Source: Lepidodermella squamata (lineage: Eukaryota; Animalia; Gastrotricha). From it: DNA of 64,000 nt. Position 1 is the first letter of the stretch, and each line of letters opens with the position of its first letter. The stretch is taken from contig JBLDXI010000031.1 in NCBI GenBank assembly GCA_047495785.1, positions 1,736,001-1,800,000 on the forward strand. The letters run 5' to 3'. This document shows, piece after piece, positions 25,172 to 33,106 of this stretch. Under the pieces are notes generated by a model. The model was not told the DNA's origin, searched no databases, and saw only the letters and a program-made list of their open reading frames with translations. Made by a program: the position numbers and the translations under genes.

Positions 25172-25209
25172 ACGGGTGTGGCGCGAACGCCGATACCCAA
25201 GTGAAATAT
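25172..25209 (-). ncRNA. RNU1: U1 snRNA, 3' fragment (Sm-site region plus stem-loop IV)
   Basis: Minus strand ATATTTCACTTGGGTATCGGCGTTCGCGCCACACCCGT contains the U1 stem IV GCGUUCGCGC hairpin. It continues the U1 5' part found beyond the far end of the transposon. Confidence 0.8.
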
Positions 25210-25383
25210 GCCGTTTGATTATTCTGGAGGAGACGTTAGCATGGAAAGCAGTGCGCCCAGAAAGCAGCTGCTTTCCATGCAGTAAGCCGTAATGAGCGTA
25301 TGCGTGGAAAACACTGCTTTCCAGGCAATTTGCCTGCTACGCACTAGCACTGCGCTCTAGGCACTGCTTTCCAAGCAAATTTC
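25210..25383 (+). repeat. Left TIR of MULE
   Basis: Near-perfect reverse complement of 32803-32976; built from repeated GGAAAGCAG/CTGCTTTCC motifs. Confidence 0.9.
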
Positions 25384-25862
25384 TCTCGGAGTGCTTAGAA
25401 TGCATTCTTGGCTCATTTCGCGTAGTTTTGCAGTTTGAGAATTACTGTTTCTGATGTTTGGGACACTTTTCAGTTATTTGTCTAATTTTCGTACTCACAC
25501 GCTTTACTCTGGGCGATAGTATTTTTGAATTATGCTATTAAATTATTATTCGAGTACATAATAGTTTGATAAGGGTGTCACGTGTGTATCCGGTACAAGG
25601 GCGGGTCGCGTGGCGATTCCTTTCGCATCAGCTGTGCAGCATACTTGTGTGGCGCGACAGTCTTGTGGTGCGGAAGCCATACCATAAAACACAGTTATAA
25701 ACCAAAGTATACCTGGAACTACGCTGTCTTGTATTCCCTGTATGAGAACTGTTTGCCAAGTTTGAACCGCAACTCTGTACATTGTAAACGTTTATTCTCT
25801 TTTAATCCATAGGCTTTCAGTTATTCGCTTTTGTAAGCTTATTATTGAGTTGTTTTCTATCA

Positions 25863-28800
25863 ATGAGTCTCTTCGACGAGATTCGTCGTATGAACAAGAA
25901 AGTCATAAAAAAGGATGACATTATCCTCGCTATGCCGCCAGTTTTTCATGGCGATTTGCTTCTGTTTGCTGCGGACTATTTGAAAAAATTGGAGAAGGTA
26001 TGCATTGGTACATTTTACTTCCAGTCATATCTGTTTGCTATCTTATCTTATAGGAGGAAAAACAGATTTATTCCCACCCTAAGGACCACCTGTATTTCGA
26101 CGAAGGAGAGGGGGGTGCTTTGAGAGCCGTTTCTTTCCAGTTGGTTGTTGATTTTGCGGTTAATTTAATTGCAAACATTTTTGTTCATCCCTAGCTGTGC
26201 TGCGGGTTTCTCCGATGAGGCGACGATTAACCCCCGAACCCAGCTAGGTTGCAAAGCCTTCAAGCGCTTCGTCTTGGTGAAGACAGCGCAGGAGTATTTT
26301 GTGGCTATTCGTTCCGGGCCTCAGCCTCACAATCATGGCGACAACCTGAATAACCAGGAAAGTGTGATTCGTCACCTGCGCCACGATCAGGAAACTCTCA
26401 GGGCAGTAGAAGATCTGGTATCTACGAAGCTCTCAGCCACTGAGATTTCGAAGAGATCCTGTGAAGCTGCTGTCCTGGAGAAGAACTCCATTGCCGATCG
26501 TCGCAAATGCCTTGATCAACTCGACGTATACTCGTTCAAAAGACGAATTATGTCGTTGAAAGGTGCGCGGTAAGTGATTTTTATTTACCATGGTATCAAT
26601 CAGGGACTACTTGTATGTTACAATTGATAATAGCCTGGACAAAGTTGAATTCCACAGTGTGGAAAAGCTGGTGGAAGCCGACAGAGGGAAGCAGGTTCAA
26701 GAAGTCATTCATTACACTCCCGGCGATTCTCCGTCCGGTTTTGTCTTGGCAATGATGACGCCTCTCCAGCAAGCTCTCGTTGCCAAAAATGAGATTTACG
26801 AAACTGGATTTCTGGACGCGACTTTCAAGGGCGTAACAAAGCATAATTACGCTCTCTATGCCATCGCCGCCGTTCAGAAAGGAGTCGAAAAATCTTTGCC
26901 GCTTGCGTTTGCCATCTTGGAACATGACGATGAGGCCAGCTTACGCCTATTTCTCACAGCGCTTCGCGACAAATGCATCAGTCTTAATCCTGCGTTCAAG
27001 TTTAGGCATGCCTTATCTCACTATCTTTTCAGTCAAGAATTACTGGGGTATTTTTCAGGACGATTGTCATCGATAAAGACCAGAAGGAGATCTCGCTAAT
27101 CAAAGAAATTTTTGATTGTTGCGTTGTCCTGTGCTACTTCCATCTGCTTCAGGTAATTGCTCGAATACTTAAATAGGATTTTTACAATGTGGCTGTATTA
27201 TAGGCTGTAATTAGATGGCTTCATGGCGAAAAATCTGGTTGTTCCGGTCGCTCTGAGAAGGCCAAGGCGGAGCGTTGCGCTGTAATAGACCTGATAGAGA
27301 CCATTCGAGCGTCTGGCAACTACGAAGAAGTGCAGGAAAAGTGGCGAGAAGGCAGCCCGAATCTGTCGCCAAAAGTCCGCACGTATCTTTGGGAATTTTG
27401 GGTTCAGGAGAAATATGCTGTGTTGTGGTGTCGCTATGCGCTCAAAAATTACCATCTTGACCAGGCTACCAATAACATTATTGAGGTGTAATTACTGATT
27501 TCGACTAAAACGACTTTATTATGTTTTCTTTTTTTTATTACGGTAGAACTTCTGGTTTTGCCTAAAATACACTTTCTTGAAGGTTTGTCAAGCTAGCTAT
27601 ACATCATTTTATTCATTTCTGTTATCTTGTATTATTTCAGGGTTCTTATAACCGCCGGATAGACGATTTGGTATTTTTGCTTTCTAACGAGGTCATGTCA
27701 TATTACGCGCATCTAATGAACCTCGATGCCCACGGTCGAAAAATCTTGAAGCTGAAGCATAAGCCGGAGCAGTTGGCTACGAAGCAAGCTGACAACGACC
27801 GTTTCTGCTCTACGGTCGTCTGGGGCGATGAACTCGTTACCGTACCGTCGTTCACGCCCAACGAATTCGACATCAAGTACGAGGTGAACCCGGCAGAGCA
27901 ACGGTGTTCATGTGTCTACAGTATTCACGGAAATATATGCAAGCATTTGCATTTCGTGCGCAAGTTGAATCCGGATAAGGTAAGACTTGGTTATTTTCTT
28001 CTATAATGTTAATAAAATAATGTTAATTTTGCGTGCGGTTCATTCAGATATCCGTTTACCGTGATCGTCTTACGAAGTCAATTGTCGACGAAGGCCTCTG
28101 CGACAAGTTGGGCGATGAGCTACGAGTGATGAGCCCAATTAGCCATCACGTCAGCCTGGTCGACCTGAAGACGATGAGATGCGACTGCATGGCGTCGAGT
28201 TATGCGCCGGATAAGGAACTTTGTTGTTGTGTTATGGCCGCTCGCCAGCTATTCCCAGGTATATTATTAAACAGTTATTCGATTTGCTGTTTTGTCATTT
28301 CATATGATTCAATTTTCAGTTGAAGCTGAGGCTGCTGACCAACTGCTAGTTCAAGCTCGTTCCACTGCGCCTAGTGTGAAAGATGCGGTTGCGGCATTTT
28401 CAAGCAACAAGGTTGCTCCGGCAACCAAAATGCCTGCAACGACACGTAACGCTCATTTCTCAAAAACCGGAATAAAGCGCTCTGCTCCTATCGACCCGAA
28501 CGAGCCAAGCTCAAGCGGCGATCATCTTGCTGATCACTGCACGAGTGCTGACCCCCTTGCTGATCATAGAGTGAAGAAATTCAGAAGCTCTAAAAGAGGA
28601 AGACAAACTCACAACGTGATGGCGAATTTCAGACGCCAAAACTGTCCCTCTGATGTGCCGGCTGATGTTGCCGCGCGACTTGCGTCAACGTCAAATGCAC
28701 AGGAACCGGTATGTACTCCCGCCTCGCGCCTCGTTGGCCTGAGTCTACCCGGTCTGCGCTTTCCTCGCCCGCCGCTCGCTGGAACCGGTCTGCGTATTCC

Positions 28801-31588: not shown

Positions 31589-32802
31589 ACAACTAATCGA
31601 TTATCATTCGCTATTTCTTGTTTTCGATAGTTTCCGCTATCTTGCTTGGTTAATTAATTGATAGCTTGTGTTACGATGAATTTGTAGTTGAGACAGCATT
31701 GCAGTTTGCTAATTGACAGGCTTGAGCGCTCAATTTTATAATAAAACGTTTCCAATCAGCATATTTCTTTTCCGTCGCTCTATAAAGGAGCCCTAAAAAG
31801 GCAGAATTCGTAACACGAAACATTTAGACAGACAGAAAGACTGTGAGAGGTAACAGAAAAGTTGAACTCAACTTGTTTGATGATTTTACGATGGGCGTCT
31901 AATCGAGACGAATCACACATTGGTGGTGAGGCGCCCCGACCGTTTTTAATTGCTAAACGTCGCGAGACAAATTGTAAAATAAATCAGTATATCAGGGTGT
32001 CAGTTTACACCAGCTGTCTGATGACGTGGGACACCTCGATGTTTGCACGAGTGCGGTGACATTACTTCAATTAACCAGCCCAAGACGAGCTGGTCTCTTG
32101 TCTGTTAGTTGCATGTCGCAACTGTTTTTTGATTCCAGTGTAAAAAACTTCTAATCCTGCCTTCTATGATAGGATAAAGGTCGGAGAAAGTCGAAAATTT
32201 CAATTATTTCAATCTTGGATGGGATAAAATCAAGATTAAAAAAAATTGCTACCCTGTTGGATTCGCACTTCCATAGAACGCGCGCCGATGTGCGCGACCA
32301 GGATCAGGATCAGGAATTACGATTTCTCCTCGCCCTGACGGACTCAAGCTTTCGCCATACGGCGGAGCTGGTGAGACAATTGCGACCTCACGCTCCAGGA
32401 CAGTTTGGTCTGGTTTACGGTTTACTGACTACTTAATGAATTTCCTACCCCTGGTACCCCAGTTACTGCTGACTGTTTCTCCAGGGCCAAGGCATTAGTG
32501 CCCAGTAAATGTTCACTTGTTTCACGGTGGCAAATGGCAAAAATACGCGATCCTCCTGAAGTAATGCGTTACTCAAAAAAAAAGAAAAGTAATTTGCTAT
32601 TTTTTGGCTTAAGTAACGCCTAAACACCTAATAATCACTTGATGGATGACCTAACGGCTAAGCATGGGGTCAAGGTCTAAAGAAAATAACAGTCATAATG
32701 AAGCGTTTGAAAAACCTCACAAATGGTGTTTCAATAATATAACTATATTTTGGAATGTAAACCAACAGAATGGCGGTAAAACGCTTAGAAAGCAGCGCTG
32801 GC

Positions 32803-32976
32803 GAAATTTGCTTGGAAAGCAGTGCCCGGAGAGCAAAGTGTGTGCGTAGCAGGCAAATTGCCTGGAAAGCAGTGTTTTCCACGCATACGCTCATTACGGC
32901 TTACTGCATGGAAAGCAGCTGCTTTCTGGGCGCACTGCTTTCTATGCTAACTTCTCCTCCAGAATAATCAAACAGC
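32803..32976 (-). repeat. Right TIR of MULE
   Basis: Inverted copy of 25210-25383, followed by the TSD TGAAATAT. Confidence 0.9.
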
Positions 32977-33106
32977 TGAAATATTTTGCACCCGACTCCG
33001 CCGATGAGGCAGAGCGCAGGGGTCAGCGGACCGAAGTGCAATGACCCGCCTCGCCCTGGGGCGGCCCCCTTCGTGATCGAGGCGCATCCCAGTGCCAGGT
33101 AAGTTT
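32977..33106 (-). ncRNA. RNU1: U1 snRNA, 5' part (nt 1-130), interrupted by the MULE
   Basis: Minus strand starts AAACTTACCTGG. It has loop I GATCACGAAG, loop II ATTGCACTTC within a paired GGGCGAGGCGGGTC/GGTCCGCTGACCC stem, stem III, and the GCAC/GTGC closing helix. Confidence 0.92.

Follow-up and report, generated by a model that had tools for sequence, protein, structure and literature searches.

A complete-looking Mutator-type DNA transposon of 7,767 bp (25210-32976) interrupts a U1 snRNA gene encoded on the minus strand; the break falls at U1 nt 123-130, in the Sm-site stretch. Excision of 25210-32976 together with one copy of the target site duplication (TSD) restores a U1 gene of 160 nt on the minus strand, as the initial annotation had proposed. 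Our preferred reading, to which we assign a probability of about 0.7, is that a MuDR/MULE cut-and-paste transposon inserted once in one copy of the multicopy U1 gene, and that this insertion was opportunistic and tolerated rather than a proven case of sequence-specific targeting.

Insertion site and termini of the element

Positions are those of the window, i.e., the whole 64-kb stretch of DNA analysed. The split gene, the ends of the element and their surroundings are as follows.

25172-25201, minus strand: 3' part of U1 following the Sm site (stem-loop IV, GGCGUUCGCGCC), from a weak Rfam U1 match and the rebuilt U1
25202-25209, strand not applicable: left TSD copy, TGAAATAT
25210-25396, plus strand: left terminal inverted repeat (TIR), starting with GCCGTTTG and carrying four GGAAAGCAGYG motifs in both orientations
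32299-32505, strand not applicable: short segment of the element whose word depth in public run X1 is very high; a high-copy repeat lying within the element or shared with it
32790-32976, minus strand: right TIR with five GGAAAGCAGYG motifs (one mismatch allowed)
32977-32984, strand not applicable: right TSD copy, TGAAATAT, equal to U1 nt 123-130
32977-33106, minus strand: 5' 130 nt of U1 (5' splice-site arm, stem-loops I-III, helix H and the start of the Sm site), Rfam RF00003, 79 bits
33226-33297, minus strand: tRNA-Met (CAT) gene, Rfam tRNA 55.2 bits and ARAGORN

The larger part of U1 was recognised by the Rfam U1 model (RF00003) at 32975-33106 on the minus strand with an E value of 3e-20, the gathering score of the model being 69.5. 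The match spans ACUUACCUG as well as the U1-70K and U1A loops (AUCACGAAG and AUUGCAC, respectively), and stops in the Sm-site columns. On the other side of the element, stem IV gave a weak match to U1 model positions 138-165 (25173-25200, minus strand; 11.3 bits, with an E value of 0.7 for a search of 181 nt), directly adjoining the left TSD. The split U1 was identical to the majority U1 sequence of public run X1 at every listed position. The tRNA-Met (CAT) gene lies 120 nt upstream of U1.

The two TIRs, 187 nt each, are 91% complementary (170 of 187 positions identical), and 132 of their outermost 135 nt are identical. Nine of the ten GGAAAGCAGYG matches in the window fall within the TIRs, compared to 2.7 expected. 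The TSD copies match at 8 of 8 positions and, with U1 numbered from 33106, occupy the Sm-site position, which confirms their earlier placement. The TSD TGAAATAT cannot be shorter than 8 bp, because the bases flanking those 8 differ. TSDs of MULEs are usually ~8-10 bp long, and long TIRs with a perfect 8-bp TSD are ends of the MULE type.

The same structure could in principle result from an assembly artefact or a rearrangement that placed two unrelated U1 fragments beside a repeat, with no transposition involved. This reading draws on the short contigs of the public runs: with a 1,501-nt query covering the right junction, they broke in the TIR and in U1, and none of those listed bridged 32976/32977. 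A 60-nt junction query against the run index listed no run, a weak result, since the query contained only 2 sampled words. Against an artefact, the two pieces of U1 match up to the exact nucleotide, and the perfect 8-bp duplication is located exactly at the TIR ends. Such an exact fit combined with a TSD is a signature of transposition, and misassembly is therefore very unlikely.

Coding capacity and superfamily affinity

Two genes were predicted within the element, both in the same direction.

25863-29044, plus strand: predicted transposase gene of nine exons, 881 aa (gene model, weak Pfam MULE and SWIM matches, phmmer, BLASTP)
25863-25997, 26054-26139, 26195-26569, 26604-26999 and 27059-27152, plus strand: transposase exons 1-5 (gene model)
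27204-27485, 27641-27979, 28048-28258 and 28320-29044, plus strand: transposase exons 6-9 (gene model)
28749-28962, plus strand: 36-nt tandem repeat of 5.9 copies within the final exon of the transposase, translating into PGPLLAGTGLRI repeats
29831-31588, plus strand: second predicted gene of three exons (29831-30227, 30655-31289 and 31328-31588), ~430 aa (open segments, splice sites read)

The nine predicted exons have GT-AG borders and, in the gene model, would join into an 881-aa frame without stops. The element had been described as intact; this stands for the predicted frame, and the claim holds no further. The element looks autonomous and young. In the spliced model, IVIDKD is followed by CYFH and then by TNNIIE, which corresponds to the order of the D, D, CxxH, TNNxxE signature. 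Besides this DDE core, the predicted transposase carries a putative SWIM finger and another Cys-rich motif. The SWIM pattern is legible directly in the spliced model as CSCVYSIHGNICKH (CxCx9CxH); the corresponding Pfam SWIM match reached 14.2 bits, below the cut-off of 19.6. The product of the second gene is predicted to have a Ser- and acid-rich tail; it yielded no Pfam match and no usable Atlas match.

The direct Pfam MULE (PF10551) score was weak because an intron splits the domain. Exon 4 matched profile positions 4-56 with 18.7 bits and exon 5 matched positions 67-98 with 13.2 bits, in colinear order, each below the curated cut-off, which is 27.6 for a whole protein. Homologues were more informative. 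A phmmer search of the transposase against 1.84 billion representatives returned six matches only, all distant and none of them a paralogue or orthologue, and all six bear Pfam MULE and/or ZSWIM1-3 RNaseH-like domains. The named relatives among them are fish proteins, the nearest ones found being MULE/ZSWIM-type and 29-35% identical. In BLASTP against a MULE protein (P0003), exons 4, 6 and 7 aligned in order with residues 198-302, 338-429 and 442-474, exon 4 with an E value of 1e-14 and with TNN..E aligned. A word-based protein search with a 169-aa ORF found no match.

The DDE-CxxH-TNNxxE signature is not exclusive to MULEs, because the DDE core with C/DxxH is common to hAT, P, Kolobok and Dada as well (PMC8869645). 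As recognised through its sequence homologues, the element is a member of the MuDR/MULE superfamily and not of Dada. The Mutator-like affinity proposed earlier is thus borne out by the TIRs and by the MULE homologues found with phmmer, BLASTP and, weakly, Pfam. Animal MULEs and domesticated transposases of the ZSWIM1/3 type are part of the closest known group. With MuDR/MULEs the element shares the DDE core with C/DxxH and TNNxxE, a putative SWIM-type finger beyond this core, long TIRs with repeated sub-terminal motifs, an 8-bp TSD and, as in MuDR, a second gene. It differs from them in its low identity to the fish MULEs, the nearest proteins found, in the co-directional arrangement of its two genes and in its location in an snRNA gene, a habit not reported for MULEs.

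Comparison with Dada and other elements in RNA genes

Membership in Dada, or a link to this superfamily that targets U1, U6, tRNA and 5S genes, was considered as well, the kind of target gene being the same. Dada-U1 elements (Dada-U1A_DR, Dada-U1B_DR and their fish relatives) are likewise DNA transposons in multicopy U1, tolerated through target redundancy, and their DDE transposases carry the C/DxxH signature that Dada shares with MuDR (PMC3706591). The structural features point elsewhere. Dada-U1 has no TIRs, produces a TSD of 6-7 bp and inserts at GCGAAT/GCGAAC within CCCCUGCGAAU (PMC3706591, PMC8869645), in contrast to the 187-nt TIRs and the 8-bp TSD of the present element. The Dada-type site in the split gene (GACCCCUGCGCUC, U1 nt 83-95) is uninterrupted, and the element is inserted ~33 nt further 3'. 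Dada has an N-terminal CCCC finger and a C-terminal CCHC finger, and its similarity to MULEs does not reach the BLAST level; its transposases give BLAST matches to no other transposase (PMC3706591, PMC8869645), whereas the transposase of our element finds MULE proteins by both phmmer and BLASTP. Specificity of Dada is shown by many copies, and a single copy is available here.

In Dada, short sub-terminal repeats recur in the target (PMC3706591). A comparison of the TIR with U1 gave 5 shared 7-mers vs. 6.5 in shuffles, i.e., no common motif beyond chance. The initial annotation had distinguished the element from Dada, and the TIRs, the 8-bp TSD and the site do differ from those described in the Dada papers. 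TIRs, TSD length and insertion site all disagree with Dada membership, which is largely ruled out; we regard such a relationship as extremely improbable.

Two other kinds of elements occupy comparable locations. Pokey, a piggyBac-family element in the 28S rDNA of Daphnia, is also a TIR-bearing DNA transposon in a multicopy RNA gene; it differs in superfamily, in its TTAA target and its rDNA location, and it inserts elsewhere too. The snRNA-targeting non-LTR retrotransposons, such as Utopia in U2 genes (PMC4640811), similarly settle in copies of snRNA genes, where their insertion is tolerated. Unlike our element, they employ an endonuclease and target-primed reverse transcription and have neither TIRs nor a DDE transposase.

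Copy number and choice of target

Word depth in public run X1 was ~362 for the element, ~50-100 for locus-specific flank and ~5,500-7,900 for the U1 body. These depths serve as rough copy numbers only, and at this resolution they indicate several copies of the element family and many copies of U1. Depth was higher over the TIR than over the interior of the element. Further copies were sought in two ways. Within the window, BLASTN with the element and with either part of U1 returned self and TIR matches only. JGI metagenome contigs, scanned exactly with the TIR end and at the protein level with exon 4, yielded no copy. The closest relative with a name comes from Astyanax (L001); Rfam detected no RNA gene at its locus, so that a conserved clade targeting snRNA genes finds no support there.

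The insertion may be pictured as follows. The predicted 881-aa DDE transposase with its putative SWIM finger probably binds the GGAAAGCAGYG motifs, 4-5 per TIR. It would then excise the element and integrate it at a target site cleaved with an 8-bp stagger, giving rise to the TGAAATAT duplication. The target is the sole AT-rich stretch of the GC-rich U1 gene; the TSD overlaps the AT-richest 8-mers of the gene. The cassette of U1 and tRNA-Met adjoins a large tRNA array; chromatin in such a region is probably poor in nucleosomes and strongly transcribed, as favoured by MULEs. The insertion destroys this U1 copy, since the body of the gene is cut off from its Sm site and from stem IV. With many further copies of U1 in the genome, losing this one would do no harm.

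The AT-rich target, the tRNA-rich setting and the redundancy of U1 lead us to read the location in U1 as opportunistic. This evidence is indirect, and it leans towards a chance or opportunistic insertion over targeting of U1. Seen this way, a well-preserved, very divergent two-gene animal MULE knocked out one redundant U1 copy. The locus is then a clean example of multicopy RNA genes absorbing insertions and is useful for annotation.

The element could instead represent a MULE family that is sequence-specific for the Sm-site region of U1, with its transposase, e.g., the SWIM or the N-terminal region, recognising U1 DNA near nt 123-130. The safe-harbour strategy of Dada would in that case have been invented a second time, independently. 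An intact, young-looking, autonomous copy with a clean TSD in a canonical U1 of the majority type fits such a family. Random insertion into U1 is a priori rare, because U1 makes up ~1e-4 or less of the genome and the family has a handful of copies; under uniform insertion, a hit in U1 is unlikely. The lack of a close relative among the 1.84 billion representatives leaves room for unusual biology. Against this, neither the window nor the metagenome contigs contained a second copy, the TIR and the target have no motif in common beyond chance, and the TSD merely coincides with the place where the gene is richest in AT. The junction words were absent from all listed runs although X1 contains both the element and U1, a weak argument given the 2 words sampled. 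One chance insertion in U1 is also expected among the thousands of insertions surveyed. Finally, no MuDR family of such specificity is reported in the literature searched; among the target-specific DNA transposons reviewed in 2022 are Pokey, CryptonV and Dada, but no MuDR (PMC8869645). We consider U1 specificity unlikely, and opportunistic insertion remains the preferred reading.

Some points run counter to opportunistic insertion. Only one copy of the element was seen, so that its lack of specificity is an inference, and a random hit by one of a handful of copies is rare where U1 accounts for at most ~1e-4 of a few-hundred-Mb genome. In addition, a young intact element in a U1 of the majority type is also what would be expected of an active U1-targeting family.

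If other copies of the family occupied the same U1 nucleotide, with the ATATTTCA duplication, the element would be the first MuDR-type transposon with specificity for a small-RNA gene. Among the DDE transposases with the C/DxxH signature, sequence-specific targeting would then have two separate origins. For targeted integration, such an element would also provide a cut-and-paste system with TIRs that is experimentally easier than Dada.

It had further been suggested that the U1 promoter would now read antisense into the element. In geometry alone this agrees with the arrangement of the locus, U1 being encoded on the minus strand and the predicted transposase on the plus strand.

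Structure of the insertion in the U1 snRNA gene

The U1 snRNA gene on the minus strand was split by a 7,767-bp transposon (25210-32976). The features of the locus were as follows:

25202-25209 and 32977-32984: target duplication TGAAATAT, abutting the outer end of each TIR
25210-25396 and 32790-32976: TIR pair, 187 nt, 91% complementary
29831-31588, same strand as the transposase: second predicted gene, three exons, approximately 430 aa
33226-33297, minus strand: tRNA-Met(CAT) gene, 120 nt upstream of U1

Mismatches between the outer 135 nt of the two TIRs were found at three positions only. 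The Rfam U1 model matched 32975-33106 on the minus strand with 79 bits (gathering score 69.5, E 3e-20). Within this match were the 5' splice-site arm ACUUACCUG and the loops of U1-70K (AUCACGAAG) and U1A (AUUGCAC); it stopped in the Sm-site columns. On the far side of the element, 25173-25200 (minus strand) matched positions 138-165 of the model, the last stem-loop, weakly (11.3 bits). Deletion of the element and one duplication copy rebuilt a U1 of 160 nt, with the duplication at nt 123-130. This layout is the signature of transposition into a U1 gene, not a chance resemblance: TIRs, the 8-bp duplication, U1 parts on both sides, and the rebuilt gene confirmed the insertion at nt 123-130 proposed in the initial annotation.

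The insertion cut U1 between its body and the part with the Sm site and stem IV; from what is known of U1 biogenesis, the split copy cannot make a normal snRNP RNA. The U1 promoter was oriented into the right TIR, antisense to the transposase, as had been supposed earlier, a relation of geometry only.

Predicted transposase and family of the element

Open segments of the plus strand could be joined by canonical GT-AG introns (34-155 nt) into a predicted nine-exon, 881-aa frame without stops. The motifs GFLDATF (first D), IVIDKD (second D), CYFH (C/DxxH signature), and TNNIIE (E) followed in this order, and after them a putative finger of the SWIM type, CSCVYSIHGNICKH, another Cys-rich motif, and a Pro-rich tail. 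The tail was the product of a 36-nt tandem repeat in the last exon (28749-28962; 5.9 copies, 95% matching, in-frame PGPLLAGTGLRI repeats). The shortest predicted introns of the whole element, with GT-AG ends, were 26570-26603 (34 nt) and 31290-31327 (38 nt), the remaining ones being 52-427 nt.

Positions 4-56 of the Pfam MULE profile matched exon 4 (18.7 bits) and positions 67-98 matched exon 5 (13.2 bits). The two matches were colinear, and each fell short of the 27.6-bit cut-off because the domain is interrupted by an intron; the SWIM match scored 14.2 bits, below its cut-off of 19.6 bits. Exhaustive phmmer search with the exon-4 ORF against 1.84 billion representatives yielded six matches only (best E 1e-5, 29-35% identity), all carrying Pfam MULE and/or ZSWIM1-3 RNaseH-like domains. 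Those with names were fish proteins (Astyanax, Brachyhypopomus, Fundulus). One MULE/ZSWIM-type match (P0003) aligned in exon order, exons 4, 6, and 7 with residues 198-302, 338-429 (TNN..E aligned), and 442-474. Long TIRs, the 8-bp duplication, a predicted DDE core of MULE type followed by a putative SWIM finger, and an accessory gene support the assignment to MuDR/MULE and agree with the Mutator-like character first suggested. Pfam and Atlas protein searches found no recognisable family for the accessory product (approximately 430 aa). Judged from its predicted protein, the element is a divergent MULE without a close relative in databases. The closest fish MULE, in Astyanax mexicanus (L001:7804-9764 and 21869-24561), had TIRs of approximately 1.9 kb or more with ~77-bp tandem units.

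Each TIR contained four to five copies of the motif GGAAAGCAGYG, which occurred in both orientations; of ten matches in the window, nine lay inside the TIRs (2.7 expected). These repeats are probably transposase binding sites.

Dada elements lack TIRs and make 6-7-bp duplications (PMC3706591, PMC8869645); their short sub-terminal repeats recur in the target (PMC3706591). The Dada transposases carry CCCC and CCHC fingers and show no BLAST similarity to other transposases; insertions of the Dada-U1 lineage fall at GCGAAT within CCCCUGCGAAU (PMC3706591, PMC8869645). In contrast, the present element has 187-nt TIRs and an 8-bp duplication, its TIR shares no motif with U1 beyond chance, and its transposase retrieves MULE proteins. 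The equivalent of the Dada-U1 site, GACCCCUGCGCUC (U1 nt 83-95), was uninterrupted, the element sitting 33 nt further 3'. Dada identity was excluded on three tested features, in line with the initial distinction from Dada, which long TIRs, the 8-bp duplication, and the untouched Dada-U1 site uphold.

Copy number and choice of target

No second copy was detected elsewhere in the 64-kb window, no copies in the metagenome collection by TIR pattern or by protein, and no close relative of the transposase in protein collections. Three public runs were listed, all stored as short contigs, and two contained parts of the element. In run X1, with both element and U1 sequence, contig word depth was approximately 362 over the unique right part of the element, roughly double this value over stretches identical between the TIRs, approximately 50-100 in the locus-specific spacer upstream of U1, and approximately 5,500-7,900 in the U1 body. 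These word depths, which are not copy numbers, suggest that the element is present in a handful of copies and U1 in dozens. Among the short contigs listed for the public runs none crossed 32976/32977, and a 60-nt junction query of the run index, with two sampled words only, listed no run. The split U1 showed no difference from the majority U1 of X1 at any listed position; therefore, a canonical copy was struck, probably recently.

We favor an opportunistic, tolerated insertion in U1, with a probability of roughly 70%. A safe-harbour MULE family truly specific for U1 would account for a hit on so small a target by a low-copy family, but the duplication falls in the AT-richest 8-mers of a gene with 64% G+C, as expected from generic AT preference. 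The surroundings, with the adjoining tRNA-Met gene and an array of >130 tRNA genes from 36 kb on, may represent open chromatin. Moreover, Rfam showed no RNA gene at the Astyanax locus that carries the nearest named relative, and the literature on target-specific DNA transposons includes no MuDR family (PMC8869645). U1 specificity is thus unlikely, and other alternatives are minor.

Other repeats of the locus

An X1 contig followed the window from U1 through the 33 nt that precede the U1 start (33107-33139) and then diverged, with a loose end at 33139; approximately 33 nt of proximal upstream sequence are thus seemingly common to different U1 loci. Inside the element, word depth in X1 rose to 31,800 over ~200 nt (32299-32505) vs. 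~362 elsewhere, and contigs ended at both edges. This segment resembles a short SINE- or MITE-like repeat of very high copy number, which the element either hosts as a nested insert or shares.

The tRNA genes (>130, both strands, 36377-62522) formed an array of ~4.47-kb tandem units. In one unit, two tRNA genes were separated by a 3.04-kb insertion (50231-53257) with the direct repeat TTACACCCAGT on either side (50217-50230 and 53258-53271) and a terminal (ATT)n run, which looks like a retroelement insertion with target duplication.
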